The notes beneath the pieces were generated by a model. The model worked only from the letters and a program-made list of their open reading frames with translations, made no database searches and had not been told where the DNA came from. The position numbers and the translations under genes are program-made. Shown in pieces: positions 9,261 to 42,771 of a stretch of DNA of 45,154 bases (its first letter is position 1; the number at the start of each line of letters is the position of its first letter). This DNA is from Dicyema japonicum (Eukaryota; Animalia; Dicyemida): positions 856,656 through 901,809 of the forward strand of contig RDEW01000024.1 of NCBI GenBank assembly GCA_011109175.1, in the 5' to 3' direction.

Positions 9261-9329
9261 TTTACAAAATTAATAAAATTAATATTAATTAATTTTTATT
9301 TAAAAATAAATTTTTTTAATTCATTATTA

Positions 9330-12915: not shown

Positions 12916-12981
12916 CTTTTTTTCTTATTTTTTCTCTTTTAATGTAATCAAACTCTTATTTATTTTTTTAATCAAAAATCT

Positions 12982-17524: not shown

Positions 17525-18158
17525 CAGGGGTTGTTAAAAATCATGATTTTTATGAAAAAATTCGAAAAAATCTGATTTTTTATTTAAATCAGATAAGACT
17601 TCTACTCCCACCAAGCTATAGGTGATACTTTGCTCAATAAATTCGGAGCGTACATGTATAGTTTAAATGTAACAGCTTTTGCTCTGAAATTAATCAGAGT
17701 CGGAAGAGCATATTCATAATGTTCAGCACAATATTCCAAGTCGATGTCAATCTAGCAGTTGAAAGAGATCTTCAACTACGTGTTGGATCCATATCAATCA
17801 AATTTTTCTTGATGACGTCGACGTAGTAATGAAATTAATTAAAGCCTTCTATCATCTTTAAAAGGAATTCGCTGATCAATTCACTTACAGGTTTCGACGG
17901 ATTATCAGGAATATCAATATTAGTTCGACAAAACAAATGATGCTGCTTCATCCGAAATACAAGACCTTGTACCTCCTTCCCGCGATTACAGTATTTGGCA
18001 AGACTCATGGTCTTTCCAGGAATAATACGTTTATCGAATTGAACCCACAAGGCATCACGCTTTCTTCCAGACATTAAAAAATCATTTAAAGATTTTTTTA
18101 ATAATTTAAATCATTGATTTTTTTATTAAATTCAAATGATTTAAATCTAACAACCCTG
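17525..18158 (-). mobile_element. Internally deleted non-autonomous hAT element (BED finger plus C-terminal piece)
   Basis: TIRs CAGGGGTTGTTA (17525) and TAACAACCCTG (18158); subterminal GATTTAAATC-type motifs; 8-bp flanks GTTGCAGG / GTAGCAAG (6/8 identical). BED-like MSGRKRDALWVQF..AKYCNRGKEVQGLVFRMKQHHLFC and LINFRAKAVTFKLYMYAPNLLSKVSPIAWW. Confidence 0.85.
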
Positions 18159-20026
18159 GTAGCAAGTAATGAAGAATGTTTAAATCTGTCTGCTATAACT
18201 GTGGGCAGTTTTCTCCACAAGTTGACGACTCAAAATAAAATTAATCCGTTACTTTTTGGGATTAATGATTATAAATTTTTTTCTATTCATTCGTTTGTTT
18301 TATAAATTTTATTAATTAATTAATAAATTTAAATTAATTTTGATCTTGTTGAGTATTTTTTTCCCTGAAAGTTACCTCAAAGTTGAATAATACACCTAAA
18401 CGCCAGTGTCAGGCCGGCACGAAAAAGGATCATTTGCTCTTCTCCACTCCACTGTAGGGGTTTCCACAACTGCATGTAATGGACTTCTTACCTTTTATGC
18501 TGATACCTGATGGAGTCTGTTTCTGTAGAAGTGGAAACTGGATACACTTAAATAGTTGTTTACTTTAACTTCTTTCTCGGTGTATCCGGAGTTGGTTAAT
18601 AAATAAATAATCGACGAAACCACACTTCCAATTACTTGTTAGAAAACTATTAAGATTACAAGGAATTTAAAAAATCCTTTATTTCACACAATCTTTTAAC
18701 AGTTCCAAACTGAGTGCCCTCATAGTTTTATGTTTCAATAATCTATTTAAGGAAACCCATCAAATTCTACATATACTTCGTCTACTTTAATATGTGCGAC
18801 ACATGGATTTACTTCCACATATTTATTTTGTTAAATGCGTGAATTGCAGGCATTTTGTCCTTCTGCTGAATTTCTTCATCTAGAAAACGTCGACTTATTT
18901 TATTAAAGTGATGCTTGTAACTTTTTAGATTTTTTCTCACCGCTTTGTGTCAAATTAACGGCGTTATGAATAAATCCGATTTCGCTTACTGCTTATCTGA
19001 TTATTTAGTGCTTAAGAATGTAAAAAATACTGATATTTTGCACAAAATCGTGATAACTTAACTTTATTCCCAAAAATAGGATTACTATCAATACCCCTCT
19101 GGATTCATCAAATTCTGTAAATTTCACCTGTTTTGCACAAAATGATTTCTCTGCCCGACGGATTTTTGGAGAAGAGTGCGTATTTATGTTCTGCCAGCAC
19201 CTTTTATAACCACGTGGATAGACATACTAGTGTCCTAAAAATGCAGGAAGAATCATCACCTAGTTGTCATTAGTAGTCTGTTCCATCAACTCAACTTCCA
19301 TTTTTTTTTCACGAATTTTTAAACAGGTTGTTCCCTAAAGTAAGAAATTTAGATTTTTGTCGTGGAAGCTGAGACTTACTATCTGGTTTAATTGACCAAG
19401 GTGTGCTTGATTCCGGCGAAACAGGTGGATATTTTAGATAACTTTCTAGATGGCCATTTATCGGAAAATAGACGACCTCGTTCACTGTTAGCCTGCTTTT
19501 TGTTTTTAAACCTGCTTATTTGGGTTTTTTGACTTTTATGATTGTAGACAGAGTCTCATCCACGAACTGGAATAACAATTTTGAGATATTTGAAGGAAAT
19601 ATCTCTCCCGATGATCAGTACAATCTTCAACTCCAAGTAAACAACTTTGAACATGATGAAAGCTTTTTGTGAGATTTATTTATGTTATTTTCTAAGAAAT
19701 AAATCCATCAAGCTTCTTAGTATTTGTATGGACCCCAATTCTACTGCGAGTACGTAATTTAACTGATAACAGATGTTTATACCGCAATTGATTGTGATTG
19801 GCTTTTTCGTTGTGTTAACATATTTAGCTGTGTTTTGATAGGTGGAATAGAGTGGGATTTATTAGATCAATTTACCCTTCAACTTCGAAGCTTCGGAGCA
19901 TCGGTGCTTTTGTCCATAAACTTCACTTCAGAGATAATTCTTACTCTGAAATCAAGAGTGACTGTCTCGCTCCATGCAGGTTACGCGAATTCTAAGCGCT
20001 ACACTTTGACCTTGGATTTTTTTGGA

Positions 20027-20663
20027 TGTTGACATCTAAAGTCAATTAACCACAATTAATTCACTATTTATTCATAAATCGAATTATCCGCATAAGAAAA
20101 AAGCATATTAAAAGTATGATCAAAACTTCTAAGAATACAATGATATTGTTTCATATCTACAATGCAAGATCATCAACCAAAATTTTACACGAATGCAAAA
20201 ATTTAGGTTTATTAAGAAACCAATTTTTTTGGTTGTTGGAATGTTCTATAAACTCTATACAAATGATGAGGCTCATAAACAATGTTATGGCTCAAGACGA
20301 TATTCAAACTATGAAGATAGAATGCATGAAACAGCATTTGACCACTCATTATGGAATCAATAAACTGAAAGAATTATGCGACAATTATTATTTCACCATC
20401 CACAGATCCATCATACGTGATTTATGTTCCTGATCCACAACATGTTCACAAAGCCAACCGTTAAAAGCTTAAATTCCATTTGATTCACATTAAAGCAAAG
20501 TTTCCTTGTGAAAGATTTCAAATGGACTTAATGGATTTAAGTCGATGGTCCCAGGCCAATGATGGCTTTAAATATATATTTAATATTATTGACGTATATT
20601 ACAAATTTGTTTTGCAAAGCGATCGTCTCAAAAGAAGCAACAGTTATTTGTGTTGATGTCACA
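20027..20663 (+). mobile_element. GIN/Ginger-type (KRBA2/SCAND3-like) integrase remnant, left-arm copy
   Basis: HLTTHYGINKL..YYFTIHRSIIRDLCS..TCSQSQP (HHCC-like), then KAKFPCERFQMDLMDLSRWSQANDGFKYIFNIIDVYYKF (rve start). Ends TGTTGACATC ... GATGTCACA. Confidence 0.75.
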
Positions 20664-23600
20664 AATTAAATAATCTCGAGTTAAAAATTTTTACGCCTTT
20701 CTGTTTTGTAATTTTGTCATCATGTTGTGTTTACTTTTTTTCATAAAAATTCAAAAATAAGGCAAGTGAGGTTAAACTCCTATGTTAATAGAGCACAATA
20801 GATAGAATTAAGGTAGTGGTAGGTTTAGGAAATGGTTAGGATTAGGTAATGATTTGGAGTAGTAGATGGTTAGGGTTATGATGTAATTGGTTAAATTAGT
20901 GGTTAGGGTATTTTTTTTAATTTATTTAACCCAAGACCACGGTAAAATCAAACTAATTATCAGGTGATCCCTATGCATTCTAACAGAGACTCATCTTCGC
21001 TCGGAAGTGTATGGTTTAATTAGGATCAAGATAGGGGATTTAATGAATAATTTCTATTATTATAATATTTATTTTTTATAAGTTTATTTAAAATAATAAC
21101 TTATAGTTTCATTTTAGAACAATTACTATGTGGCGTTTTATTCCTCAACACTTGCTTAAATACGATTTTTGAAATTGAGATTTCAATTTTTATGAAACGT
21201 CACCTGTCAAACTAAACTGTCATGTTACAAGGTTAAAGTGCAACGGCTAAAATTGTAGTAATCTGCATGGAGCGCGACAGTGACCAAAGAATTTCAAGTT
21301 TCTATTTTGACGTTGGATTGCTTACTGAGAAGTTGCTGGCAGAATTATTATCCGTTCGGATCGAATTTGAACAATCTATTGAGAATTTATCTTGTCTAGA
21401 AGAAGTTAAACACTTCAGACTCTTCTCGTGACGTTAAAAGATCTGCTATTTTGTTGGTTGTACTTCTTTATCAGGGAATGATGGATAATGAATAATTCTC
21501 ATTTTCGGGGGTTTATTATGAGACATGGGCTGCTCGTTACATTTTCTGGCCTTGAAAAATTTTTTTGATTATACGACATTTATTTTTTATATACGATTTC
21601 TATCGTGATTAATATTTAGATTATTTTTATTATTTTATTGCAGCAAATATTTAATTTTTTATAGCGGCAAACATAAATTTCTGTAGTGTGATATGGTGGA
21701 AGGTTGTTTTGTTTTAATGGGTTTTTAAAAGACTGCGTGGAATATGAATTTATAAAAGATGCTTTGGATATAACTTCCCCGAAAATTTTCTGAGGCACAG
21801 AAAATATAGGCTTCTTAAGAGATAGAGAATTTCTTAATTATCAATGAAAGGTATTGTAAATGTGCAATAAATGTATGGACTGTATCTTAAAGTTACTGAT
21901 CCCAGGCAAGTCAAATCTCTGGATTTGACTCCGAAATGGAGCTCGTGGCGTATTACAGAGATTTAACTCGGAGAATTAAATAAAATTGACTATGATTGTA
22001 GTCAAAGATAATCACTCTCGAGATTGAGAAATCAAAAAAGTCATTCAAAATTGTGAAGTTTGCAAATTTCCACCTACCTTAAAATTTTAAGATTTTTTAA
22101 TAGTAGATTGAAGATATAAATCACCACATGTTTGCTTCTTGTCCGAATATACGTTTCAGATAGATTTTAGAGATTTTAAAAAAATTTTCATGGTAAATCA
22201 AAATTTCAAATGGAGTTGACGGTAATTGACATATATAGTAGGTTGGCTTTTTAAAACATTTTTTATAGATTCGTATTTGCAGTTATTTCAAACATCAAAC
22301 ATATTCACTGATAGCCTAACAATCTTCGAGAAAGGGATAGTCGAAAGATTCAATTAAACGATAATGAGAAAGCTGTCAAAAATGCTGGATAACAGTGAAA
22401 TAAGTTGTTTGATAAATTAGAAAGTTAGTGTACAGTTATAACATATATGTCCATTAATTTATTTAAAAAAGTCTTAAATTCGAAAAGCAAAGACTGTGTA
22501 GAGCTAAACTTTTAGAAGATTTTCAATTATTGAGGAATGAAAATTCTTCTTTCAAATGTGTTTTATATGTTAATAAGGATGCATAATGACTTAATGTTTA
22601 ATTTTTAAATTCTGGAAGAAATTGTGTAATACTGAACGTATCTCTATTTCTGTTTCTGAACCATGAACCATCTGTCATTGTTTGACGCTATGTCGCTACA
22701 TAAATCTCTTTCTCTGTTACAGATAAAAAAGAAAATTAAGGCATGAATGAATAGCCTTCCATTTGTTGATTATTAATGAAATCACTTCTAATCGAATGAT
22801 TGCTCCTCTTGCCGCTGTTATTTTAAACATTACCTCAACCTTTACATGATTTATTGCTAATGTTGTTTAAGAATTTTTATGATGCTTAGTCCATTCCTGT
22901 CAGAATTTTTCATTTTTCCATTGTTATGTGGACGTAGATTTAGATTTTTTACATGACAGACACCTACAATTTAAATTCTCTTTATTTAATAAAAAGTGTA
23001 GTAATTAATGACTAACTGCTTGGATATATTTTTCGATAAAAACAAAATCATATACGATTAAAAATTGAAGTTATAAGCAAATCCTAATAAATCAGATCTA
23101 CATTTCTATTAATTCTATTGAATTGGAAAGATTTTTGTTTTTCTAGCATAAGGGTTTATTTTGCAACCATTCAAAACGATGCACATTTCTTCACATATTG
23201 TTGTGCTTAGGAAGTAACGTAACCGCTATAAAAATGGTGGAATAATTTTGATGTGTTTTACCAATTCCTGAAATAAAAAAACAACATTACTTTAGAAATA
23301 AATCAATATATATATATATATTTTTAAAAATTTATTTAAATAAAGAACATATTATTATGGAACGTGCCGTCGAGACTTTATGGTCCAGTCACTCGATCGA
23401 TACTTGCTTGTGTGGGAGGTCGAGGTAAGAGCATCGGGCCAAAATGAGATCCCTGCTAGAGCGTGCTAGGATCACATGATTATATAGTTTGTGTAACCGT
23501 GGTCTTTGTGTTATTACTATAACTAATTGACTGGGGAGAAATTAAGGAATGCTCTTCATTTCTATATTTTTTTTGTTGTTTGTAAGTCCTTTATAGACGA

Positions 23601-23667
23601 TCCGGTTCCGTAATTAAATGTTCACTGGTATCACACGTCAAGACAAAAAATCGTGGATGCGTGGAAG

Positions 23668-24426
23668 ATTCGACCATAATGTATAGCAGCGAGATTCGAA
23701 CTACGGGCCAGGCTTCTTTCCCTGAATCCGTTACATTGCACCACCTAAACATTTTATTAGATTATTAAGAGAATCAGTTCGCATTTGGAATTAGTAGATT
23801 ATTAAGTCAATTTTCTATCTTTGATTTAATTAAATTCAAAATTTCTAACATAAAATTCAAAATTTACTTTCTTCATATTAAATATAATTTCATCAAAAAT
23901 AGCATCATCTATTGATACAAACAAATATGATTTCAAAGCGAACGCGATCTATTATACCTAAACATTTAAACTACAAATTTCGCAATAATTTGAATCCACA
24001 TGTATTGTCATCTAAAATTGATAAATGAATACATCGAATAAGCTATCTAGAGGCGTTAAAACACTATTTTAATATAAATGAATTACTATCAGCCTCTCCA
24101 AAATTAATCAAGTTATTAAAAATAAAAATACCATAGAAAAATCCGAAAAATTAATAATTTACAGAATAATTCTGACATTTTCGAAACTTTCCTCGTATTG
24201 AGTAAGATTACATAATTATGTTCAATAATTTAACTCGAAAAATTAATAATTTATCGAACCAGCATAACATATATTGGAGTAGAATAACATTTCGAAATCT
24301 AAATAATCTAAAATAAATCAATAAAACCTCTATCGTTTTTGAATGTCGTTGACTTCAACTGTTTTTTCCATTTTTTAGATTTTTGATGATGCAGTAGGTT
24401 ATAAATTTAATAATATAAAATCAAAG
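23668..24426. other. 759-bp segment present only in the left arm
   Basis: The right arm joins ...GAACTAGTTAG-CTT-CCACGCATCC at 34973-34975; in the left arm the segment is bounded by AAG (23665-23667) and AAG (24424-24426). Confidence 0.9.
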
Positions 24427-25093
24427 CTAACTAGTTCAGCTAATAAACAGACTTTGACAAATAAGTTTTAATCCTGTCACATAATCAATGTTAAGTTTCG
24501 ACTTTGAATTATTTTGGGTCAAAAAACTGAATAGCTATGTTGAAAAAATATAAACTACATGTCTCCAATATAAAGAAATTTTTCCATCTGTCGAGAATTC
24601 TGAATCAAAAAAAATACTCTACTTGTTAAAAAAATTTTCCAATTTTCTTCAGTGTATATAAAATCAGGATGAACAGCTTGGATTTCAAAAATAAAAAAGA
24701 ATATTTTATCAGTCCGTGCAAGAGATTCTTTTTTGGGTAGCGCACAAGCAGCATCAATAGGGAATGTCTTAAACAATTTTGGATAACTGTGGATGAGTTT
24801 CTTCAGTATCTCTCGGTCTCTTCTTTATCGTATTGACCCAAACATGAAAACCTAACACTTTATTCTCTTACCAGGCCGAGAAAATCGCTTTTTTTATACC
24901 TCCCAAGAAGTCGATCAAACATATGGTAGACTTTGTGGAAAAGCCCAGACACTTTTCTTTGGATTTTAAACTTCGAATAAGAATTTCGAAAGTAATTACC
25001 TCTTAATTTGATTAATCTTTTTATTTTAAACCTAAAGTCTCCAATAAGTTTTAATTATGAGAACAAAAAATATTAAAGAAAATATCGTTAATA

Positions 25094-27491
25094 TTAGTGA
25101 TTCGAAACATAATTCTAAAATAATAAGAAAAATACATTATAAGATTCTTTAACGTCAATGGCACATTCTTGTAGATTCTTGATATTTGATAGCGAAGCCA
25201 AAGTTTCAATTTTGCTGAAGACATTTTTAGACATCATCATTGGGATGAATATTTGTGCTACTAAATCAACAAATAGTACGTTCATAGTAAACCATTCGAG
25301 AAAATTCCCAAATGGCCCAAAACCATAGTCTTTGGTCTAATTCCTCATTTAAAAGGTTTACAAGTGAATCAATAGATCTTTTGTTAAATGATATCTTACC
25401 GATAATATCCGATATAAAGTAATGTCCCATATTATCATTTGAACATGAAGCAATTGTATCAATAATATATTCAGACACGGTTTTATTTTCTGTATCAAAA
25501 TAATCAAAAATCTTCATATCTTCAGTAGAGTCACTCATTATGTTTGATAAAGCATTGCAGATGGCAATTATTGATATGTGTCCAAGTATCGCCAAAGACG
25601 TAGTCCCTATTAAAATTACACAAAACACACAATAAATAGGTAATCAATCCACTATTCCGAACCAGAGGTCGAATTTTCTCGAATTTAGTTAGATTTTCGA
25701 TATTAAAAAAAACTGGAAGTAGAAAGTAATCATGCAAAATAATATAATTTTTAGGAAACTGTTTAAAGAAGTCTAGAATAAGATCAATCCCTCCCAATTC
25801 AACAAACAAAGTGGCATTGTCGTTGTTTGCATCTGACAGATAATGTAAACCAAAATCACCTAAAAGATACCACAAAATTCTCCAAGCCACATTACAGTAA
25901 GGAAAAGCTATTAGTTCTTTGTATTTTTTAATATGATTCACGATTGACTAAATCGAAATAAACGATACCTCGATTGATCCGTAAAATCCCAAATAAGACA
26001 AAACCTCAATACTTTGACTCTTCATTGGAAGATACAATACATCATCACTCTCGATAATTCTTCAATGTGCGTGTGAACATCCCTGACGAATGTTTGAGTG
26101 AAAAATGAAAAAGACAAAATCTAAAATGAGCAAGCAAAATACAAAATTTGATAACTCCCAAGGTTTTATGCAACTCATAATTTCGCATAATATATTCTGA
26201 ACTGAAAAAAATATAAAAATGTGACTACCGTATGATGACAACAATGTGCTTCTAAAGTAACAAGGATAGCTTCATAAATAAGGCTAAGTTAACATGGACT
26301 CAAACCATCGATAAGATTCAGATATGTTCATTCCATCGATTTCGGTATTTAAACAATACCTATCAAGTCAACGTACGCGATTACATGATTTGTAGAATAA
26401 CCTTAGTATTTTGTGATGTTTTCAACAAACGGCAGATAAACTAAAATATAATTTCAAATACCCTCAAAAATCGTTTATAAAGAGAAGGCCGAATTTCAGA
26501 GTCGCAGTCGTTAATATAATGTAAAGTAGAACAAAGCATCGCATCCTTATGTTCAAAGTGAAAAATTGAATTAACCAAATTATATATGAGTAAATTTGAT
26601 TCAATCTACAATTATTATTAATAATATTACATTGTCATTATTTTTAAAAAATTGCGATATTTTTTGGAAGCAAAATGTGTCAATCTTGTGTTTCAACAGT
26701 TCTCTAATTGTTACCTAGCAAAATACGGTTTTAGTAATCCATAATCAATCAAGAATCCTGACAAATCAAAGAATTCTAAATTAGTGGCTAAATTTAATAA
26801 CGTTCTAAAATCACAGCTTAATTCATGCACATCTTTACTGTTTGTATACGAAAAATATCTTAATCTAACAAAATAAAAACCTTAGAGATCTGGGACTGGT
26901 AAGACTTTTGTTAAATTCTTCAAAATTGGATACCAGAACATTGTCAAAATTAATTCTTTCGAGTTCTATGATCAGTTTGATTGTGCAACTATAAATTTTA
27001 TTTGGACTACTTCTTTCAAGAAAGGAATCTGATAAAAGTTCTAGTGACCTAATTTCACTGAATCCGCTTTTAAATAGCAAATGAAGTAAAACTGGGTCAT
27101 CATATTCCAAAAGAGTGAAAAAATTGACATTATTTGGAAAATACTTCAGATAAGGCATATTCTCGGAAGATGAAATATAAGCCAACTTGATATTCGTTAA
27201 ATTTGGTAGGTTTTGGCACAAATTTGCTAGATCTTTAATATCAATTTGATTATTTGACAAATCAAGGCGGAAAATGTTGTAACATACTACTGTGAGTTTG
27301 CTTAATATTGAGAAATCATGCAAAACTGATAATATCTTTTGTGAATTTTGTGCTTTCAAATATTCTATTTCATAATGTATTCTTTTGTCAAACATCATCT
27401 TCGACTTTGAGCTTAATCCGCCATATTTCTTCATGTTAATGATTTTTCGATATTCATTAATGCAAAGTGCATACAATGAAGGAATTTGCAT
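25094..27491 (-). CDS. ZER1: ZER1/ZYG-11-family Cul2-Elongin BC substrate receptor (BC-box, LRR, ARM); 15 exons, predicted 689 aa
   Basis: N-terminal PSLYALC (BC-box-like) and LRRs (LDLSNNQ, LEFFDLSG). ARM matches: VAWRILWYLLDANNDNATLFVELGGIDLILDFFKQFP vs ZER1 VAWSxMWNVTDET..C..F...G......FP; RSIDSLVNLL..WFWAIWEF vs RSFEPILRLL..QHWAxWAL. Introns: 26859-26880, 26704-26726, 26606-26630, 26441-26461, 26360-26384, 26284-26305, 26197-26228, 26121-26142, 26018-26040, 25948-25968, 25833-25859, 25607-25628, 25258-25279, 25115-25135. Spliced length 2070 nt, no internal stop. Family-level call, not proven orthology. Confidence 0.85.
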
Positions 27492-28762
27492 TATGTTTAA
27501 AAATTATAGATTTTAAATTTAAAACCCAAATTAAAAAATTAATATAAAAATCCAGAATTAAAAAAATACTCTTATCTTTTTTACTATAAATTTTTCTTTA
27601 CACTTCGAGTCATCAATATTTTTTATTGTGATACATTGAAACACCAAATGGATGTTTTCCATCCTTTATGGTAGTTCTTGATCGATATTTATTATTTGTG
27701 ATGCTTCTGTCTCCGTGACAATGGGAACTTGATGCACTTAATTAGTTTCAAATTTGAGTAAAAATAGCAAAAATTAATCAAAATTGTATCCCGACAACAT
27801 AATTGACGTTTAGCTCTCTTTCATGATCACAATTGTGATAAATGAAGAAGCATTCTTAGTATCAATTCATCTCATATCGAAGACGATCAAATTGGCTGAG
27901 AAAAGGACGATGTAGAACACTTTGGGAAATACTCCACACAAAAATTGTTTCATATGTTAGGTAATCGAATTTGTAAGACGAATCCTGGATTTACAACACA
28001 CAAAGATGTTAGGGTTTACAAAGGTGTCATTTCTAAGAGCCCAAGTTTGGTATTCTCAATATAATTGATCAGATAATTTCTGTAGCACAAAAAACATGAC
28101 ATCCAGCTCTTCTTTAAACGTTAACTTTTATAGATGGTCTCGTCATAGCGCGTTTGCTTTTAATCTATTTAGTATCTTCTCTTCCTGTATGTGACTACTC
28201 TTTCCATAATCCTTGTAGACTTTAAGAGAAGATTCAATCACCTTTAAATATGGATTATCTCTCTGGTTTCAGACCTAAAAATTATGAACCAGAAGATAAA
28301 AATCTTGAGTAGTTTGAAATGCTGTTAGATTTGAAAGAAAACGTAAAAACTAAGAACAAGAGTTTTAAAGGTGTCCAGAGTAATCTAACACTTATTAAAG
28401 CTCAATGTTGTATGTATATGGCACCATAACTCGCGGATAAATGTACGGATTTTAATTTAAAAAAAAGTTATTAACAAATAAAAACAATGTCGAAAAAGTG
28501 AGTTAACCAGATATATTTGATCAATATCAACCTGTCATTTCAAAAACTCCACTTTAATCATTTCTGGGTACTAATACAAAATCTCAAAGATCCGAGAGAT
28601 AGGTGATAATGAGAAACAGTCCATGTGGCATAAACAATCAAATCTTAATATTTTTAAACTGCTAAACACTTTTCTTACAAATGGAATATTAAAATACTTA
28701 ATAGTCACCTAAGCACTTATAATCAAACTAGACACCTGTGTTATCGTATCACATATATACGT

Positions 28763-28920
28763 AAATTTGACTAAAAATAGCAAAAATCAATCAAAATTGT
28801 ATCCCGACAACATAATTGATGGTTAGCTCTCTCTCATGATCCCAATTGTGATAAATGAAGAAGCCACTGAGTATCAATTCATCTCATATCGAAGACAATC
28901 AAATTGGCGGAGAAAAGGAC
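28763..28920 (+). repeat. Extra copy, in the spacer, of the sequence upstream of the ZER1-like gene
   Basis: Direct repeat of 27750-27908 and inverted repeat of 31495-31652. Confidence 0.9.
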
Positions 28921-31911
28921 TTTAACAAGTATATAAATTCTGGCTGTGGAGGTCCAGGAGAGACTCAGCGTTGTTTGTCAAATAATCGAAGCTCGCGGCA
29001 GACCCTAGACCACATACACGCGGAACGTGCGCAGGTGTCTTTGCACCCACCTTTGAGACGTCTGTTTCTTTTGCGCGACTCTAGGAATCTAGGGAATCTG
29101 ATTTCTACACAATCAAGAGACCTTTGTGAGCACAGCTAGTTATATGAGCGAATCTCGCCGCCACGCAGAAAGGGCGGCCGTTATATGACCATTTTTTAAC
29201 TTTTATCAAAATAAATTGATTTATTTCTTTGAACTTATCTAATATTGAAAGTACTGAAGGAGAATGGACAGGGAGTTATTTTAACATTTTACGTTTAATA
29301 TTGAGACGATTATCAAATAGTTAAAATTAAATAAATATAATTTAAAAATAATATCAATTGGTGTGTTGATGGCGACAATCTATATAGGTTTTTGATAAGA
29401 CAATTCCCAGTCACAGAGAGCCTATCGTTTTACAAAAGTGAGTGAGAACACGAGTGATGAAAATATTGATAACTTTTGGAAAATAGAATGTTTCCCAAGT
29501 TTTGGGAAAGTAAACACAATTTTACAACATTTATAGAAAATCTATCATTAAATTTATGTTCGCACGTAGTCACCGGAACCTTAATGAAGCGTTTAGGGAT
29601 AAAATGTTGTCAGAGATGTCCTTAGTCTCTCTTTGACCACAAAGATTTTGTAAAATCTCAAAAAAATTGAACCCGATTATAATTTTTTATCTGAATACCA
29701 TAGTAGTACTATACATGCTGACATTGCTCTATCTTTTTGACAATTTAAGGTAAATTAAAATAAAATATAAAAATTGACTATTCAAAATAGAATAACCAAC
29801 AAACGGAAAGATATACATCCCCCGTTTTTAAAGTTATGGACTCTACATTTGGTTTGTATTATTGCTTCTAAGAACTGCGACGAATTGCAAATACGTGTCT
29901 TTTAAAGGTCGTGTAAAATATAAAATATGAACCACAAAGTAAGCCTTGTCTGCAAAAAAGAAGGGACCATTAAATATGCAATTTTTTTTCTAGCCACTTT
30001 TTCAAAAAAGAATTAGAAGATTTATATTTCTCACTAATATCGTTATTACTGTGTATAGATTGGTCAACTGGTGACACTACAAACTAGAATGTATGTTGGG
30101 GGAGGTGTAGAAAAAGGTTAAAAAGCAATAATCTTTGGAGATAGTGTTCTGGTATGAATTTACTAATCAATTAGAAAGTAGAAATGTGAAACATTATCTA
30201 ACCCTCTATTGCAGAGAGAACTTGAGTAAAATAGGTGACAAACCATCATTGCATTAATATTATTGGATGGGTGCTTGTGAAAGAAATGCGAGAATTATTG
30301 GAAACAATCTGATGACTTGAGAATAAATATACGGACATATAGAAAATGTTGATCACATTGTATTAGTTGTATCAATGAGGACAATAGACCTACGCAAGTC
30401 AAAATCTAATAATCGAGTGAGGAGAATAAATAAAACAGATCAGAGATAAAATATAAAAAGTTTTATATTGACATTGAGAGGTTAACCGAATGGATGATAT
30501 CCCACTAACGTTTATCGACTATATACGAAATGGTCTGTGTTGAATAAAATTCTAAAATTCTGAAATTACTGGCATAATTTTTGACATAACAACTATTTGA
30601 GAAAAGAAAAATTGAAAGTTTAAGAAGAGAAGAATTGGAACAGGGGCGAGGAGAAGGTATTAACTAATGCCTTGGATAGTCAAAACTTTAATATTAAAAG
30701 TTCCTTTACAGAGTTTTGTCATGATTTATTGAAGAAGACTGCATCATAGGTGTTAGAACAAAGAGAGAGGATTAATGGAAGAGACAAGATATCAATCATT
30801 AACGACAACATATTTTGTTATCACCGAAAGATTAATTAAAGACAATTTTTTCCAATGTTCCCGCCGATAACACGAACACTCTGATACAAAAGTCAATAAA
30901 AATGACTAAAGCTGTTCCAGGACATGTGAATAACTTCCAAGACACTGTCACATACGGCTAAGTGGAACGACGTACAAAGGTGGAGATATCCCCCTTTTAC
31001 CAGCTGTGGAATCTGAATTTGGTTTGGATTATTGGTTCGTTCGAACACATGAGATTTTCAAAAGATGTCCATATTACTAAGCGGATGCACCATTAGCGTA
31101 TGAAATTGATGAAAATGATAAAATACATGACAAATTCGATGACGTTTTTGCATGTTGAAAATAATCTTGTTCTCAAAATGGGTAAGGATTATGGAAAGAG
31201 TAGTCACATACAGGAAGAGAAGATGACTAAAGTAGATTTAAAAGCAAACGCGCTATGACGAGACCACCTATAAAAGTAAACGTTTATAGAAGAGCTGGAT
31301 GTCATGTTTTTTGTGCTACAGAAATTATCTGATCAAGTATATTGAGAATAATCCAAACTTGGGCTCTTAGAAATTATACCTTTGTATACACTAACATCTT
31401 TGTGTGCTGTAGATCCAGGATTCGTCTTACAAAATCGATTACCTAACATATGAAACAATTTTTGTGTGGACTATTTCAAAAAGTGTTCCATCTCGTCCTT
31501 TTCTCAGCCAATTTGATCGTCTTCGATATGATCTGACTTGATACTCAGTGGCTTCTTCATTTATCACAATTGTGATTATGAAAGAGAGCTAAACGTCACT
31601 TATGTTGTCGGGATACAATTTTGATTAATTTTTGCTATTTTTACTCAAATTTAAAACAAATTAAGTGCATCAAGTTCCATTGTCACAGAAACAGAAGCAT
31701 CACAAATAATAAATATCACCAAGAACCACCATATAGGATGGAAGACATCCATTTGGTGTTTCAATGCATCACAATAAAAAAAATATTGATGACTCGAAGT
31801 GCTTAAAGAAAAATTTAAAGTAAAATAGATAAGAATATTTTTTTAATTCTGGATTTTTATATTAATTTTTTAATTTGGTTTTAAATTTTAAATCTATAAT
31901 TTTTAAACATA

Positions 31912-34307
31912 ATGCAAATTCTTTTATTGTATGCACTTTGCATTAATGAATATCGAAAAATCATTAACATGAAGAAATATGGCGGATTAAGCTCAAAGTC
32001 GAAGATGATGTTTGACAAAAGAATACATTATGAAATAGAATATTTGAAAGCACAAAATTCACAAAAGATATTATCAGTTTTGCATGATTTCTCAATATTA
32101 AGCAAACTCACAGTAGTATATTACAACATTTTCCGCCTTGATTTGTCAAATAATCAAATTGATATTAAAGATCTAGCAAATTTGTGCCAAAACCTACCAA
32201 ATTTAACGAATATCAAATTAGCTTATATTTCATCTTCCGATAATATGCCTTATCTGAAGTATTTTCAAAATAACGTCAATTCTTTCACTCTTTTGGAATA
32301 TGATGACCCAGTTTTACTTCATTTGCTATTTAAAAGCGGATTCAGTGAAATTAGGTCACTAGAACTTTTATCAGATTCCTTTCTTGAGAGAAGTACTCCA
32401 AATAAAATTTATTGTTGCACAATCAAACTGATCAAAGAACTAGAAAGAATTAATTTTGACAATGTTCTGATATCTAATTTCGAAGAATTTTCCAAAAGTC
32501 TTACCAGTCCAAGATCTCTAAGGTTTTTATTTTGTTAGATTAAGATACTTTTCGTATACAAACAGTAAAGATGTGCATAAATTAAGCTGTGATTGTAGAC
32601 CGTTATTAAATTTAGCCACTAATTTAGAATTCTTTGATTTGTCAGGATTCTTGATTGATTATGGTTTACTAAACCCGTATTTTACTAGGTAACATTTAGA
32701 GAACTGTCGAAACACAAGATTGACAAATTTTGCTTCCAAAAATATCTCAATTTTTTAAAAATAATGACAATGTGATATTATTAATAATAATTGTAGATTG
32801 AATCAAATTTACTCATGTATAATTTGGTTAATTCAATTTTTCACTTTGACATAAGGATGAGATGCTTTGTTCTACTTTACATTATATTAACAACTGCGAC
32901 TCTGAAAATCGGCCTTCTCTTTATAAACGATTTTTGAGGGTATTTGAAATTATATTTTAGTTTATCTGCCGTTTGTTGAAAACATCACAAAATACAAATG
33001 TTATTCTACAAATCATGTAATCGCGTACGTTGACTTGGTAGGTATTGTTTAAAACCAAAATCAGTGGAATGAACATATCTGAATCTTATCGATGGTTTGA
33101 GTCCATGTTAACTTAGCCTTATTTATGAAGCTATCCTTGTTACTTTAAAAGCACTATTGTTGTGATCATACGGTAGTCACATTTTTATATTTTTTTCAGT
33201 TCAGAATATATTATGCGACAGTTATGAGTTGCATAAAACCTTGGGAGTTATCAAATTTTGTATTTTGCTTGCTCATTTTAGATTTTGTCTTTTTCATTTT
33301 TCACTCAAACATTCGTAAGGGATGTTCACACGCACATTGAGGAATTATCGAGAGTGATGATGTATTGTATCTTCCAATGAAGAGTCAAAGTATTGAGGTT
33401 ATGTCTTATTTGGGATTTTACGGATCAATCGAGGTATCGTTTATTTCGATTTAGTCAATCGTGAATCATATTAAAAAATACAAAGAACTAATAGCTTTTC
33501 CTTACTGTAATGTGGCTTGGAGAATTTTGTGGTATCTTTTAGGTGATTTTGGTTTACATTATCTGTCAGATGCAAACAACGACAATGCCACTTTGTTTGT
33601 TGAATTGGGAGGGATTGATCTTATTCTAGACTTCTTTAAACAGTTTCCTGAAAATGATATTATTTTGCATGATTACTTTCTACTTCCAGTTTTTTTTAAT
33701 ATCGAAAATCTAACTAAATTCGAGAAAATTCGACCTCTGGTTCGGAATAGTGGATTGATTACCTATTTATTGTGTGTTTTGTGTAATTTTAATAGGGACT
33801 ACGTCTTTGGCGATAATTGGCCACATATCTATATTGCCATCTGCAATGCTTTATCAAACATAATGAGTGACTCTACTGAAGATATGAAGATTTTGATTAT
33901 TTTGATACAGAAAATAAAACCGTGTCTGAATATATTATTGATACAATTGTTTCATGTTCAAATGATAATATGGACATTCACTTTATGACGGATATTATCG
34001 GTAAGATATCATTTATACAAAAGATCTATTGATTCACTTGTAAACCTTTTAAATGAGGAATTAGACCAAAGACTATGGTTTTGGGCCATTTGGGAATTTT
34101 CTCGAATGGTTTACTATGAACGTACTATTTGTTGATTTAGTAGCACAAATATTCATCCCAATGATGATGTCTAAAAATGTCTTCAGCAAAATTGAAACTT
34201 TGGCTTCGCTATCAAATATCAAGAATCTACAAGAATATGCCATTGACGTTAAAGAATCTTATAATGTATTTTTCTTATTATTTTAGAATTATGTTTCGAA
34301 TCACTAA
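31912..34307 (+). pseudogene. ZER1: Frameshifted second copy of the ZER1/ZYG-11-like gene
   Basis: Exon 1 is open (20 substitutions and no indels vs the left copy over 611 nt, counted by hand). 1-bp indels vs the left copy lie near 32740, 32849, 33052, 33155, 33831, 33892 and 34016; the BC-box PSL is changed to LLL. Some indels are in homopolymers and could be sequencing errors. Confidence 0.8.
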
Positions 34308-37300
34308 TATTAACGATATTTTTTTAATATTTTTTGTTCTCATAATTAAAACTTATTGGAGACTTTAGTTTAAAATAAAAGATTAATCAAATTAAGAGGT
34401 AATTACTTTCGAAATTCTTATTCGAAGTTTAAAATCCAAAGAAAAGTGTCTGGGCTTTTCCACAAAGTCTACCATATGTTTGATCGACTTCTTGGGAGGT
34501 ATAAAAAAGCGATTTTCTCGGCCTGGTAAGAGAATAAAGTGTTAGGTTTTCATGTTTGGGTCAATACGATAAAGAAGAGACCGAGAGATACTGAAGAAAC
34601 TACATCCACAGTTATCCAAAATTGTTTGGCACATTCCCTATTGATGCTGCTTGTGCGCTACCCAAAAAAGAATCTCTGGCACGTACTGATAAAATATTCT
34701 TTTTATTTTTGAAATCCAATGCTGTTCATCCTGATTTTATATACACTGAAGAAAATTGGAAAATTTTTTTAACAAGTAGAGTATTTTTTTTGATTCAGAA
34801 TTCTCGAAAGATGGAAAAATTTCTTTATATTGGAGACATGTAGTTTATATTTTTTTCAACATAGCTATTCAGTTTTTTGACCCAAAATAATTCAAAGTCG
34901 AAACTTAACATTGATTATGTGACAGGATTAAAACTTGTTTGTCATAGTCTGTTTATTAGCTGAACTAGTTAGCTTCCACGCATCCACGATTTTTTGCCTT
35001 TACGAGTGATACCAGTGAACATTTAATTACGGAACCGGATCGTCAATAAAGGATATACACACAACAAAAACAATAAAGAAATGAAGAGCATTCTTTATTT
35101 CTCCCAGTCGATTAGTTATAGTATAATAACACCAGAGACCACGGTTACACAAACTATATAATCATGTGATCCTAGCACGCTCTAGCAGGGATCTCATTTT
35201 GGCCCGATGCTCTTACCTCGACCTCCCACACAAGCAAGTATCGATCGAGTGACTGGACCATCAAAGTCTCGACGGCACGTTCCATAATAATTTGTTCTTT
35301 ATTTAAATAAAAATTTTAAAAATAATGTTTTTTATAAATTCCATACTTTATATCCTGATTTTATTCTAAAGTAATGTTGTTTTTTTATTTCAGGAATTGG
35401 TAAAAACTTTAAAATTATTCCACCATTTTTATAGCTGTTACGTTAACTTCCTAAGCACAACAATATGTGAAGAAATGTGCATCGTTTTGAATGGTTACAA
35501 ATAAACCCTTATGCTAGAAAAACAAAAATCTTTCGAATTCAATACAATTAATAAAAATGTAGATCTGATTTATGAGGATTTGCTTATAACTTCAATTTTT
35601 AATCGTACATGATTTTGTTTTTATCTAAAAATATATCCAAGCAGTTAGCCATTAATTGCTACACTTTTTATAAAATAAGAAAATTTGAATTGTAGGTGTC
35701 TGTCATGTGAAAAATCTAAATCTACGTCTACATAACGATGGGAAAATGAAAAATTCTGACAGGAATGGACTAAGCATCATAAAAATTCTTAAACAACATT
35801 AGCAATAAATCATGTGTAGGTTGAGGTAATGTTTGGAATAACAGCGGCAAAAAGAGCAATCATTCGATTAATAGTGATTTCATTAATAATCAAAAAAATG
35901 GAAATGTATTCATTCAGGCCTTGGTTTTCTTTTTTATCTGTGACAGAGAAAGATATTTATGTTGCGACATAGCGTCAAACAATGACAGATGGTTTATGGT
36001 TCAGAAACAGAAATACAGATACGTCTCAGTATTACACAATTGCTTCCAGAATTTAAAAATTAAACATTAAGTCATTATGCATCCTTATTAACATAAAAAA
36101 ACACATTTGAAAGAAGAATTTTCATTCCTCACTAATTGAAAATCTTAAATAAGTTTAACTCTACACAGCATTTGCCCTTCGACTTTAAGACTTTTTCAAG
36201 TAAATGAATGGACATGTAAGTTATAGCTGTACACTAATTTCTATTTTATTAAACAACTTATTTCATTGTTATACCAGCATTTTTGACAGCTTTCTCATTA
36301 TCGTTTAATTGAATCTATTGACTATTCCTTTCTCTAAGATTGTTGGCCTTCAGTGAATTTGTTTGATGTTTGAAATAACTGCAAATACGAATCTATAAAA
36401 AATGTTTTAAAAAGCCAACCTACTATATATGTCAATTACCGTCAACTCCATTTGAAATTTTGATTTACCATGAAAATTTTTTAAAATCTCTAAAATCTAT
36501 CTGAAACGTTTATTCGGACAAGAAGCAAACATGTGGTGATTTATATCTTCAATCTACTATTAAAAAATCTTAAACTTTTAAGGTAGGTGGAAATTTGCAA
36601 ACTTCACAATTTTGAATGACTTTTTTGATTTCTCAATCTCGACAGTGATTATCTTTGACTACATTCATAGTCAATTTTATTTAATTCTCCGAGTTAAATC
36701 TCTGTAATACGCCACGAGCTCCATTTCGGAGTCAAATCCAGAGATTTGACTTGCCTGGGATCAGTAACTTTAAGATACAGTCCATACATTTATTGCACAT
36801 TTACAATACTTTCATTGATAATTCTCTATCTCTTAAGAGGCCTATATTTTCGATGCCTCAGAAAATTTTCGGGGAATTGATATCCAAAGCATCTTTTAAA
36901 ATTTCATATTCCACGCAGTCTTTTAAAAACTCATTACAACAAAACAACCTTCCACCATAGATATCACACTACAGAAACTTATGTTTGCCGCTATAAAAAA
37001 ATTAAATATTTGCTGCAATAAAATAATAAAAAATAATCTAAATATTAATCACGATAGAAATCGTATATAAAAAATTAAATGTCGGATAATCAAAGGAATT
37101 TTTCAAGGCCAGAAAATGTAACGAGCAGCCCATGTCTCATAATAAACCCCAGAAAATTGAGAACAATTCATTATCCATCATTCCCTGATAAAGAAGTACA
37201 ACCAACAAAATAGCAGATCTTTTAACGTCACGAGAAGAGTCTGAAGTGTTTAACTTCTTCTAGACAAGATAAATTCTCAATAGATATTTCAAATTCGATC

Positions 37301-37995
37301 CGAACGGATAATAATTCTGCCAGAAACTCCTCAGTAAGCAATCCAACGTCAAAATAGAAACTTGAAATTCTTTGGTCACTGTCGCGCTCCATGCAGATTA
37401 CTACAATTTTAGGCGTTGCACTTTAACCTTGTAACATGACAGTTTATTTGACAGGTGACGTTTCATAATAAATTGTAATCTCAATTTCAAATATCGTATT
37501 TAAGCAAGTGTTGAGGAATAAAACGCCACATAGTAATTGTTCTAAAATGAAACTATAATTATTATTTTAAATAAACTTATAAAAAAAGTAAATATTATAA
37601 TAATAGAAATTATTCATTAAATCTCCTATCTTGATCCTAATCAACCATACCCTCTCCGGGCGAAGATGAGTTTCTGTTAGAAAGAATCGGGATCACCTGA
37701 TAATTAATTTTGTTTTACCGTGGTCTTGGGTTGAATAAATTAAAAAATACCCTAACCCTAATTTAACCAATTACATTATAACCATAACATCTACTAATCC
37801 AAATCATTACCTAATCCTAACCATTTCTTAACCCTACCACTACCTTAATTCTATTTATTGAGCTCTATTAACATAGGAGTTTAACATCACTTTATTTTTA
37901 TTTTTGAATTTTTATGAAAAAAAGTAAACACAACATGATGACAAAATTACAAAGCAGAAAGGCGTAAAAATTTTTAACTCGAGATTATTATAATT

Positions 37996-38631
37996 TGTGA
38001 CATCAACACAAATAACAGTTGCTTCTTTTGAGACGATCGCTTTGCAAAACAAATTTGTAATATACGTCAATAATATTAAATATATATTAAAAGCCATCAT
38101 TGGCCTGGGACCATCGACTTAAATCCACCAAGTCCATTTGAAATCTTTCACAAGGAAACTTTGCTTTAATGTGAATCAAATGGAATTTGAGCTTTTAACG
38201 GTTGGCTTTGTGCACATGCTGTGGATCAGGAACATAAATCACGTATAATGGATCTGTGGATGGTGAAATAATAATTGTCGCATAATTATTTCAGTTTATT
38301 GATTCCATAATGAGTGATCAAATGCTGTTTCATGCATTCTATCTTCATAGTTTGAATATCGTCTTGACCATAACATTGTTTATGAGCCTCATCATTTGTA
38401 TAGAGTTTATAGAATATTCCAACAACCAAAAAATTGGCTTTCTTAATAAACCGAAATTTTTGCATTCGTGTAAAATTTTGGTTGATGATCTTGCATTGTA
38501 GACATGAAACAATATCATTGTATTTTGGTAGTCCTGATCATACTTTTAATATGCATTTTTCTAACACGGGATAATTCGATATTTGAATAAATAGTGAATT
38601 AATTGTGGTTAATTGACTTTAGATGTCAACA
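37996..38631 (-). mobile_element. GIN/Ginger-type integrase remnant, right-arm copy
   Basis: Mirror image of 20027-20663. Confidence 0.75.
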
Positions 38632-41279
38632 TCCAAAAAAATACAAGTTCAAAGTGTAGCGCTTAGAATTGGTGTAACCTGCATGGAGCGCGACAGTCAC
38701 TCTTGATTTCAGAGTAAGAATTATCTCTGAAGTAAAGTTTATGGACAAAAGCACCGATGCTCCGAAGCTTCCAAGTTGAGGGTAAATTGATCCAATAAAT
38801 CCCACTCTATTAACCCAATAAACACAGCTAAATATGTTACACAAAAAAAGCCAATCACAATCAATTGCTATAGACAATCAGTCAAATTACGTGCTCGCAG
38901 TACAATTGGGGTCCAAACAGATACTAAGAAGCTTGATGGGTTTATTTCTTAGAAAATAACACAAAATAAATTTCACAAAAACTTTCATCATGTTCAAGTT
39001 GTTTACTTGGAGTTGAAGATTGTACTGATCATCGGGAGAGATATTTCCTTCAGGTATCTCAAAATAGTTATTCCAGTTAGTGGAAGAGACTCTGTCTACA
39101 ATCAAAAAGTCAAAACCCAAATAAGCAGGTTAAGGACCGAAAAACTGAAGTGAACGATGTCGTCTATTTTCCGATAAATCTATCTAGAGCGTTATCGGAG
39201 AAACATCCACTGTTTCGCCGGCATCAAGTACACCTTGTCAATCCAGATACTAAGTCTCAGCTTGAACGACAAAAATCTAAATTTCTTACTTTAGGGTACA
39301 ACCTGTTTAAAAATTCGTGAAAAAACACAGAAGTTGGTTGATGGAACAGACACTAGATGACAACTAGGTGATGATTCTTCCTGCATTTTTAGGAACTAGT
39401 ATGTCTATCCACGTGGTTATAAAAGGTGCTGGCAGAACATAAATGCGTACTCATCTCCAAAAATCCGTTAGCTGAGAAATCATTTTGTGCAAAACAGGTG
39501 AAATTTACAGAATTTGATAATCCAGAGGGTATTGAAAGTAACTCTTTTTTGGGAATAAAGTTAAGTTATCACGATTTTGTGCAAAATATCAGTATTTTTT
39601 ACATTCTTGAGCACTAAAGAATCAGATAAGCAGTAAACGAGGTCGGATTTATTAATAACGCCGTTAATTTGACACAAAGCGGTGAGAAAATCTAAAAATT
39701 ACAAGCATCACTTTAATAAAATAAGTCGGCGTTTTCTAGATGAAGAAACTCAGCAGAAGGACAAAACGCCTGCAATTCACGCATTTGACAAAATAAACAT
39801 GTGGAAGTAAATCCATGTGTCGCACATATTAAAGTAGACGAAGTATATGTAGAATTTGATGGGTTTCCTTAAATAGATTATTGAGACATAAAACTATGAG
39901 GACAATCAGTTTGGAACTGTTAAAAAATTGTGTGAAATGAGGGATTTTTTAAATTCCTTGTAATCTTAATAGTTTTCGAACAGGTAATTGGAAGTGTGGT
40001 TTCGTCGATTATTTATTTATTTATTAACTCCGGATACACCGAGAAAGAAGTTAAAGTAAACAACTAATTAAGTGTATCCAGTTTCCACTTCTACAGAAAC
40101 AGACTCCATCAGGAATCAGCATAAAAGGTAAGAAGTCCATTACATGCAGTTGTGGAAACCCCTCCAGTGGAGTGGAGAAGAGCAAATGATCCTTTTTCGT
40201 GCCGGCCTGGCACTGCCTTTTTGGTGTATTATTCAACTTTGAGGTAACTTTCAGGGAAAAAAATACACAACAAGATCACAATTTCTTTAAATTTATTAAT
40301 TAATTAATAAAATTTATAAAACTATACGAATGAACAAAACCTTGACTCCTTTCACAGAAGGCAAATTCGGTCTCTCTTAGGACTAAAGTGGCCAATGCGT
40401 GTAGGGAGTGAAAATTTATATAGAAGATGCGGTTCCGGACCTCTGAGCACCTTGATCATGAAGGCNCCGGCCTGGCACTTGGCGTCACCTATACAGGTGG
40501 ATCACATGACGCCACTCTATTAGGAAGAGAGAGGAGGAACAGACAAGCAAGCAGAAAATTTGAGCCATTTAACCACGCAGCATCACATGGCGCCACGCGG
40601 CAAATGGTTTAAAATCAAGTATGACAATTGGTTAAGTGAACCGTAACTGTAGTTATGCTAAAATTAATAAATAATGAATTTAATATAAAATATAAATTAA
40701 AAGTAAAGTGCAATGAATAATCCCAGAGAATACAATCAAATAAGGTAATGTACACAACAGATCCAATGACCAACACAAACATATAATAGAAAAACTCACC
40801 AATATTTCCATCGAACTTAAAAACTCATTCAAAGACCGAAGAAACCGAAAAATAATGAACGCTTTCACGAAAAACGTGCGTATTAGATTTTTATTAAGAA
40901 CCACAAGATTGAGAACATTAGCAAGAATTTGCAAAATATTGACAACAATAATGCCATAAATATTGATAAAAAAATAAAAAGTACATTCATTGAGTAATCC
41001 GCAAAAACACACAAATTTGGAGTGCAATGAAGACTTTGAGAGAAGCCATTCAAGTTCACGACAACGAACTGGGTAACATAATATCCCTTATAAGGGAAAA
41101 GTTTTATTTTCACGTAAAATTAGAGAAAATTAGAATTTAATTTTGCTTAAAGAATTCAAGACCAATCAACAATACAGTCAATTGAAGATATCTCTATTTT
41201 AGCTAGGGTTCTTATTGTGTCGTCACTGGATTTCAATTTTTGCTTTACGTTTTTAAGTTATCTTAGGCTTTTCATGGGA

Positions 41280-42110
41280 ACGGCCTCCTTAGCAAACATC
41301 GTGATCATCCATAGTTCTGTTCGACTGTGATTCCAACTCCATTCTCAGAATGTGCCCAAATAGTCTCTAACGGACTCCATTATCTCCTGGCTTATTGATG
41401 TACACCCACATATCTTATAAATTCCTTTGCATGAGTTTCTGGTTGAGCACCACATTGCAAACATCGTGATCATCCATAGTTCTGTTCGACTGTGATTCCA
41501 ACTCCATCCTCAGAATGTGCCCAAATAGTCTCTAACGGACTCCATTATCTCCTGGCTTATTGATGTACACCCACATATCTTATAAATTCCTTTGCATGAG
41601 TTTCTGGTTGAGCACCACATTCCTGTTTTTTTAGGTTATTCCTGAAAGATTCCAGCCTCTCCACTTTTTTGAGGTAGCCTAGATCCCAGTTTTGTATAGC
41701 AGAATAGGTTTTATAAGCGAGTTTTAAATCCTTAGTTTGTTGCTGATCCATCTTCGCTTTTTAGTTTTTTTCGCATTTGCCAAGGTTTTTTATATATCAT
41801 CACTCTCTCCTAGAAGGAAACTGAGTTTTTGCATCTAGCCATTTCTCTTTACTCATTCTTTTTATTTCCTTGAATTTTGTTTTGTCTTTGTTTACTGTAA
41901 GAAATCATTTCCCAAGTAGATCCGATGCTTTTTTCTAATATATGTCCCAAGAGAGCTCTTTTTTCAGAAATTAGATCGACGTCGTCTGCATAGATTACTT
42001 CTATTTTCTTTTTTATAACGGTCTGAGTTCCCTCATAGTTGTTCTGAAATTGTCGTAAACGTTAAATGGGAAAGAGTCTCCTTGAGGGGTGTCAGTGTTT
42101 GTGTTAAATT
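41280..42110 (-). mobile_element. RTE-like non-LTR RT and C-terminal remnant
   Basis: NTDTPQGDSLSHLTF, VIYADDVDLIS, then SLIKPILLY and ERLESFR; heavily disrupted. Confidence 0.8.
41292..41621. repeat. 165-bp near-perfect tandem duplication
   Basis: 41292-41456 vs 41457-41621; one mismatch seen; no N. Confidence 0.95.
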
Positions 42111-42288
42111 TTAATAGTAAATTTCTAATATTGTCTATATCGGGCATGTCAAACTAGAAAGCTTCAGGACCGCTAATTTGAGTGTACAATTGTACCACAA
42201 TAACAAATCTACTACAAAGGCTACATTACGATGAAGCTCCACGACGATAAAAACACAATTTTAATCACTTTTTTTAAAATTATCATTT

Positions 42289-42560
42289 TCACTCTTTAGT
42301 CTTTATCCTGAGGTTCCTTTTTTTCGTGACTATTTTTCGTATCTGAAATGTATTATCAGTTCCGACCTTGATCAGGGATGACAACTGTTCATCAGTCAGC
42401 CTTGTTTTCTGAGAAAAATTTGTTGATTTCCTAAAGGAAAGTACATTGCTGTTAGGAAAATGAACCAAATTTTCATGTGACAATTGTGACTTTATAAGCT
42501 TAATTTAGTAATGAACACTTTTGTAATGAACATCTTTTAACTCTATTGTCAGTACTCAGA
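42289..42560 (-). mobile_element. hAT (SPIN/GTF2IRD2-like) transposase fragment
   Basis: FITKLSL/KSQLSHENLVHFPN followed directly by KTRLTDEQLSSLIKVGT; these match KLxLWKSQL..NL.HFP and RSRLTDEHL..LLR of this group. Confidence 0.7.
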
Positions 42561-42771
42561 GAGTACGCAGGTCAGGTTCAATAAACCTGATATTTCAGTC
42601 CACGATAGGGTAAATAATAGATTGTACTCATAGATAATGGAATTACTACTCAAGGATTATTGAAGCCCACAAAAGTTGAAGAACTCAAACTAATGTCATT
42701 GTTTTAACCTGCAAATGCTATAAATCTCACTTGGGAGTTATCCAAATCGATGCACCAACTAGAACGTCATT

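Follow-up and report, generated by a model that had tools for sequence, protein, structure and literature searches.

An interrupted palindrome carrying two copies of a ZYG11/ZER1-like gene in Dicyema japonicum, probably an old inverted segmental duplication

Large palindromes with genes in their arms are known from the primate X and Y chromosomes, where the arms of palindromes of the P1-P8 type stay about 99.9% identical through continuing gene conversion, and lineage-specific expansions of zyg-11-like genes are known from Caenorhabditis, for example the zeel-1 family. Inverted copies are also reported from origin-dependent inverted-repeat amplification (ODIRA; PMC4689423), whose model gives an inverted triplication, and from Leishmania (PMC4256157), whose inverted amplicons are extrachromosomal. 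Here we describe a stretch of 45,154 nucleotides from the dicyemid Dicyema japonicum (NCBI GenBank assembly GCA_011109175.1, contig RDEW01000024.1, positions 856,656 to 901,809 of the forward strand; this whole stretch is called the window), in which two long inverted arms around a unique spacer each carry a copy of a gene that is ZYG11/ZER1-like in architecture. We consider it likely that this palindrome is a real and old inverted segmental duplication in a gene family with birth-and-death turnover. An inverted segmental duplication had already been proposed in a preliminary description of the window, made from its letters alone, and it stands as the best reading of the sequence, with the coordinates right; we infer rather than prove both its physical reality, for which unitigs of 100-240 nt do not suffice, and its mechanism of origin.

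A self-comparison of the window, suggested in the preliminary description, was run by BLAST and gave two collinear inverted blocks, 18286-23667 against 40334-34973 (93.2% over 5431 columns) and 24424-28214 against 34975-31184 (96.5% over 3807 columns); a repeat search of the window returned the identical blocks. Together with a global alignment of one arm against the other, these searches define the following parts:

18286-28214: left arm, 9929 bp, found by self-BLAST, repeat search and global alignment, both ends sharp
23668-24423: insertion in the left arm only, about 756-759 bp, with an AAG/AAG direct repeat at its flanks, found by self-BLAST and global alignment
28215-31183: spacer, 2969 bp, unique and without internal symmetry
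31184-40334: right arm, 9151 bp, matching the left arm in reverse complement, found by self-BLAST, repeat search and global alignment

Within the assembly this structure is plain, and its geometry is exact and far beyond chance; self-BLAST bears out to the base the arms of 9.9 and 9.15 kb and the 2969-bp spacer reported before. The global alignment contains 8691 matches, 398 substitutions (4.4%; 190 transitions and 208 transversions) and 85 gap events, among them 62 gaps of a single nucleotide, 14 of two nucleotides and the one gap of 759 nt, in agreement with the substitutions, many small indels and 759-bp indel of the preliminary description. Overall likeness of the arms is about 96%, or 95.6% by substitutions alone. 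Because substitutions exceed indel events in this way, and because the insertion has AAG at either side, we regard the arms as separate evolutionary lineages and not as products of read errors. Homology stops sharply at all four arm ends. A sensitive blastn search (word size 7) found no inverted homology between the outer flanks (7128-18285 against 40335-45154, that is, 11 kb on the left and 4.8 kb on the right), and sensitive blastn likewise found none inside the spacer. Simple allelic haplotigs should remain collinear past the ends of the block, and this sharp end of homology argues that the arms are not of that kind. The longest open reading frame (ORF) of the spacer (28855-29139) has no Pfam match, and no Rfam match was found in the window.

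The locus shares with the primate X and Y palindromes inverted arms of about 10 kb or more, a unique spacer on the kilobase scale and protein-coding genes within the arms, and the uneven identity of its arms would fit one conversion event or more. It differs from them in arms that are 95.6% identical, in an arm-specific insertion and in the interruption of one gene copy. Fold-back and template-switch duplications are also similar, with an inverted copy beside the original, a short unique loop and sharp ends without transposon hallmarks; compared with ODIRA and the Leishmania amplicons, the present locus differs in having two full copies only and in lying within a chromosome. With 4% divergence, the short repeats that seeded such an event can no longer be read from the junctions.

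The G+C content of the window is 26-36%, the genetic code is standard, and its genes are interrupted by GT-AG introns some 21-25 nt long, a size that among animals has been published for myxobolid myxozoans and Dicyema japonicum only (PMC13644364). For gene models, dynamic programming was used to find the open path of greatest length that GT-AG introns of 21-32 nt allow. The copies of the gene in the window are:

25115-27491, minus strand: left-arm ZYG11/ZER1-like gene, 708 amino acids, 12 exons, 11 GT-AG introns of 21-25 nt
31912-34286, plus strand: right-arm gene copy, frame lost after 308 amino acids, stop at 32937
5733-6219, plus strand: dead gene fragment of 0.49 kb, in which intron 1 is flanked by a portion of exon 1 and the beginning of exon 2

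The left gene runs from an ATG at 27491 to a stop at 25115, with its 5' end toward the spacer, and the ATG of the right copy lies at 31912 on the opposite strand, so that the two copies stand head to head, 4.4 kb apart, and diverge from the spacer as had been described. The path found for the left gene is a clear outlier of the window, the runner-up having 410 amino acids in 14 exons and shuffled controls reaching at most 202 amino acids. Two other first introns were rejected for this gene: one of 16 nt, replaced by a frame-keeping intron of 22 nt, and an alternative of 32 nt, which meets a stop.

In the 2.55-kb gene span, 66 substitutions and 11 single-base indels separate the left copy from the right. 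Relative to the left copy, the coding sequence of the right copy has eight indels, each of 1 nt and inside the left copy's exons; the first that is impossible to bypass lies at 32848, and the right copy is still split in two when introns of 15-45 nt are allowed. Across 542 in-frame codons we counted 10.5 synonymous and 30.5 non-synonymous differences, a ratio of non-synonymous to synonymous rates (dN/dS) of 0.72, a sign that one copy or both evolve under little or no constraint. The fragment at 5733-6219, located 12 kb upstream of the palindrome, is 89% identical in DNA and carries a stop in frame, along with a 5-nt deletion and further deletions of 1 nt.

Single-base frameshifts in the assembly are not fully trustworthy. 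Even in stretches almost free of substitutions, the arms differ by 2-5 indels per 500 bp (at 24786-25285, for example, 0.2% substitutions are found with 5 gap events), and some 1-nt indels may thus be consensus errors; the fact that all eight coding indels fall in the right copy argues that most of them are real. With the left copy still open, the right copy decaying and the fragment older, the locus looks like birth-and-death turnover of a gene family. The preliminary description had counted three copies within 30 kb and seen the inverted duplication as driving expansion of the family. Two arm copies are indeed present, the right one interrupted, and the third is the dead fragment; as one copy of three reads through and dN/dS is about 0.7, driving expansion is an overstatement, and turnover is what the locus resembles.

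The identity of the predicted protein was approached exon by exon and not on the whole spliced protein. The 135-amino-acid armadillo-repeat (ARM) exon, compared by phmmer with 1.84 billion representatives, gave 11 matches (best E 5.5e-18); all but one were proteins with ARM repeats, of a generic kind. An Atlas feature search gave an Arm cluster at 0.97, and in a PDB search the sole matches were the ARM domains of human ZER1 chains (E 0.004). The ARM fold of the C-terminal region is therefore clear from its own matches, and the ZER1-specific signals are weak, in PDB as in Pfam: Pfam ZER1-like_2nd matched two successive exons at 12.5 and 12.8 bits, where the cut-off is 27 bits, in collinear order (profile positions 153-191, then 237-310). 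Exon 1 matched Pfam LRR_4 at E 0.035, which is below the cut-off for acceptance, and in the Atlas feature search the LRR_Zer-1 cluster ranked second (0.94, with 173 features in common); the remaining named clusters on the list were F-box or other LRR proteins. No match to exon 1 was found in PDB, no homologue among proteins of 112-355 amino acids and, in an exact look-up of both exon-1 ORFs, no contig; the AlphaFold single-sequence model of exon 1 had a predicted local distance difference test score (pLDDT) of 37, too low for use.

At the N-terminus, the following motif was found:

27461-27491, minus strand: BC-box-like motif S-L-Y-A-L-C-I-N-E-Y, residues 5-14 of the left copy

The right copy reads L-L-Y-A-L-C at this place, with L replacing S5. 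In ZYG11B, the BC-box residues that enter Elongin C are L18, L19, I21, C22, L23 and L26 (PMC13201589); compared by eye, the spacing of SLYALCINEY fits this BC box and the L, C and I/L positions are kept. No Cullin box was identified in the predicted protein. The order of parts, a BC-box-like helix, a weakly detected leucine-rich-repeat (LRR) region and an ARM domain, resembles the seahorse architecture of ZYG11B (PMC13201589), and the exclusive PDB matches to ZER1 ARM domains are a further, weak likeness to the ZYG11/ZER1 substrate receptors of CUL2-RING ligases, which include human ZYG11B and ZER1 and ZYG-11 of C. elegans. The substrate pocket is less similar. In the phmmer alignment with ZER1, which is of low similarity, the residues D556 and N597, which in ZER1 hold the free amino group of the substrate, align with D and N, whereas W552, N553 and E600 align with H, Y and K, so that provisionally 2 of 5 pocket residues are kept. 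In ZER1, W552A and E600A abolish peptide binding and N553A greatly reduces it (PMC9741652), and these three residues, each needed for binding of the Gly/N-degron, are the ones replaced here in this provisional comparison.

Taken together, the sequence suggests that the gene is ZYG11/ZER1-like in architecture, specific to its lineage, fast evolving and very diverged, and it is not a demonstrated member of the family, since the assignment comes from architecture and weak sequence matches and not from a significant match to a family model (ZER1-like_2nd is far below its cut-off). The label ZER1/ZYG-11-like, given earlier, thus holds for architecture and for the weak ZER1 matches and goes beyond the family models. 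The predicted protein would probably act as a CUL2 adaptor and would probably not be a canonical Gly/N-degron reader; the E3-receptor function proposed for it is likewise a prediction. The zeel-1 family of Caenorhabditis is similar in that its ZYG11-like genes are fast evolving, locally duplicated and include pseudogenised members; in the window, by contrast, neither a partner toxin gene nor a transmembrane extension was found, and nothing pointed to a selfish element.

We propose that the palindrome would have arisen in one event, in which a block some 9.2 kb long gave rise to an inverted copy of itself at a distance of about 3 kb. This block would have contained one ZYG11/ZER1-like gene with about 0.7 kb of upstream and about 6.8 kb of downstream DNA, and the copying would probably have taken place by fold-back repair or by a replication template switch, leaving the 3-kb loop between the copies. 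Both copies would then have drifted independently, gaining the substitutions, the many small indels and the one 759-bp insertion in the left arm, and a single homogenisation may have affected some of the 3' gene region. Decay of the right copy would have followed, with the left copy staying open.

The alternative that survives best, which we nevertheless think unlikely, is an assembly artefact: two divergent haplotypes, or variants of different individuals, of a single-copy locus would have been placed next to each other in inverted orientation when assemblies were merged, scaffolds built or gaps closed. Five single-N joins lie in the window (1536, 4277, 7127, 40466 and 44455), and we take a single N to be the mark that SSPACE leaves at imperfectly overlapping contig ends. 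Three of these joins, at 1536, 4277 and 44455, sit between unmerged copies of 160-290 bp that are 92.7-96.5% identical, and look like unmerged contig-end overlaps. As these copies are 3.5-7% apart, haplotype or technical divergence reaches the range of the arms at this locus. The outer end of the right arm is 132 bp from the join at 40466. The D. japonicum assembly was made from pooled parasites, with merged Platanus and Falcon assemblies, SSPACE, GapCloser and HaploMerger, and the genome has a heterozygosity of 1.24% and a repeat content of 49% (PMC6736024).

These points weigh against a real duplication, and so do several aspects of the read data, which are Illumina-derived Logan unitigs of 100-240 nt from four runs (2019) of one pooled sample, covering 26700-32699. 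Unitigs were placed with a likeness threshold of 97%, and depths are summed word depths without a genome-wide single-copy baseline. The unitigs may be the very data underlying the assembly. Those from two runs cross from the spacer into the right arm by 27 nt, less than the 31 nt taken as bridging; for the left junction no bridging record is listed, and among these short unitigs no read spans arm and spacer. At 26922 and 32511, unitigs mix left-state and right-state letters, which indicates that both kinds of variant circulate in the sample. Over the 6 kb, unitigs and assembly disagree at some 23 small indels and some 28 substitutions, many of them at full depth in all four runs, and the consensus at 26700-32699 is thus either imperfect or a minor variant of the pooled sample. 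With about 4 indel disagreements per kb, calling the right copy dead is uncertain.

Other observations speak against such an artefact. The ends are sharp at four of four boundaries with no homology in spacer or flanks, and the divergence of the arms is 3.5 times the published heterozygosity. The region 7128-40465, which holds the whole palindrome, is free of N, and the sequence of the right inner junction is supported by the crossing unitigs, which end where the arms become identical, as a de Bruijn graph breaks if an arm end has two neighbours. Left-specific and right-specific unitigs are both present with depths that are alike, also in comparison with the better-covered spacer bins, so arm depth is not below spacer depth; no half-depth signal was seen in the unitigs, given summed word depths and no single-copy baseline. 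In the central spacer, unitig depth is low and unitigs differ by 2-3% from the assembly; this low depth is probably due to the 97% threshold and is not read as copy number. Haplotypic duplications in general place two diverged versions side by side, as at the three single-N joins of this window, and are usually tandem or at contig ends and collinear, whereas the palindrome is inverted, N-free and bounded by non-homologous sequence. On balance we keep the inverted segmental duplication as the preferred interpretation.

A second alternative would be that a mobile element of about 9-10 kb with a ZYG11-like cargo gene inserted twice, independently and in opposite orientations, at sites 3 kb from each other. 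The sharp ends on both sides of the arms would fit such an element, as would the truncated gene fragment elsewhere in the window, the lack of a CACGTG excess in the window and the general richness in transposon remains, which, in the arms and outside, include:

968-1438, minus strand: ORF of a pogo-type DDE_1 transposase, E 1.9e-34
3236-3529, minus strand: RVT_1 reverse-transcriptase ORF, E 1.2e-10
20116-20433, plus strand: weak match to an integrase H2C2 zinc finger inside the left arm, E 0.0018

The arm sequence 3' of the gene, about 6.8 kb, is itself degenerate, transposon-derived DNA. However, the four arm ends carry no terminal inverted repeats, long terminal repeats (LTRs), target-site duplications or Helitron-type ends, and on these end sequences a Helitron, a terminal-inverted-repeat element or an LTR element is rejected as the unit of the arms; self-BLAST shows no direct repeats within an arm, and no intact transposase or reverse transcriptase lies within the arms. 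We therefore regard paired insertions of a mobile element as very improbable.

The 759-bp segment found in the left arm only has at one of its ends a motif resembling a tRNA T-arm, GGCCCGTAGTTCGAATCTCGC on the minus strand. ARAGORN found no tRNA in it, and a tRNA-derived short interspersed nuclear element (SINE) was rejected as its identity on this ground; it is probably a SINE-like retroposon inserted after the arms had separated. Elsewhere in the window, a tandem array at 12058-12760 has a period of 264 bp (2.7 copies) and a sub-period of 52 bp (12.7 copies), and a tandem duplication of 165 bp at 41292-41621 has 99.4% identity with no N between its copies. An element of 159 bp lies in both arms (27750-27908 and 31495-31653) and once in the spacer (28763-28920), its copies being about 92% identical. 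The hexamer CACGTG was seen 3 times in the window, where 3.4 are expected by composition, and 0 times in the ZYG11-like genes.

Equally hard to credit is a palindrome that is actively maintained by arm-to-arm gene conversion with both gene copies kept functional. Its large arms, unique spacer and genes within the arms have the right geometry, and the divergence between the arms is plainly patchy:

24424-25114, downstream of the gene: 1.2% substitution divergence
25115-27491, gene span: 2.6%
27492-28214, upstream of the gene: 5.8%
outer 5.3 kb of the arm: 5.4%
24424-26000, 3' half of the gene with downstream sequence: low-divergence patch, candidate for an old conversion tract

The longest substitution-free tract, 389 bp at 24771-25163, was reached by 0 of 2000 shuffles, and substitutions per 250-column window have a variance of 40 with a mean of 10.9. 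This contrast between 1.2% at 24424-25114 and more than 5% elsewhere hints at a single earlier conversion tract that covered the gene's 3' half; if the arms were alleles, recombination between old haplotypes would give an identical pattern. Continuing conversion is rejected because the arms are 4.4% diverged, and the 85 indel events and the arm-specific insertion likewise leave them far from an identity of about 99.9%; dN/dS of 0.72 and the interrupted right copy speak against two functional genes. The arm-to-arm conversion raised in the preliminary description is thus not found as an ongoing process, a past tract being the most that is hinted at. Finally, a missed adapter or fold-back read is rejected on account of the asymmetric 3-kb spacer, the surplus of substitutions relative to indels and the flanked insertion.

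Inverted segmental duplications, birth-and-death families and dicyemid genes with micro-introns are all known kinds of feature, and a single locus of this sort, real or artefact, would not surprise a specialist. In a literature search we found no paper linking dicyemids with zyg-11, and among the top matches none on dicyemid palindromes; local turnover of a ZYG11-like family in dicyemids seems unreported. Should the palindrome prove to be an artefact, gene-family counts and apparent expansions taken from the draft assembly would be inflated by unmerged haplotypes.

A wider view, which we offer as a long shot, is that large interrupted palindromes are a recurrent and genuine route of gene duplication in this dicyemid genome, that ZYG11-like receptors are among its fastest-turning families and that the W to H, N to Y and E to K changes of the pocket give new substrate specificities. 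Developmental DNA rearrangement and extrachromosomal DNA have been reported in dicyemids, and recurrent palindromes might be linked to both. In conclusion, if the duplication is real, this locus would be a dated snapshot of a probable ubiquitin-ligase adaptor family growing and decaying in a genome that is among the most reduced of any animal. The gene would have been copied by inverted duplication and possibly converted in a single round before one of its copies was lost.

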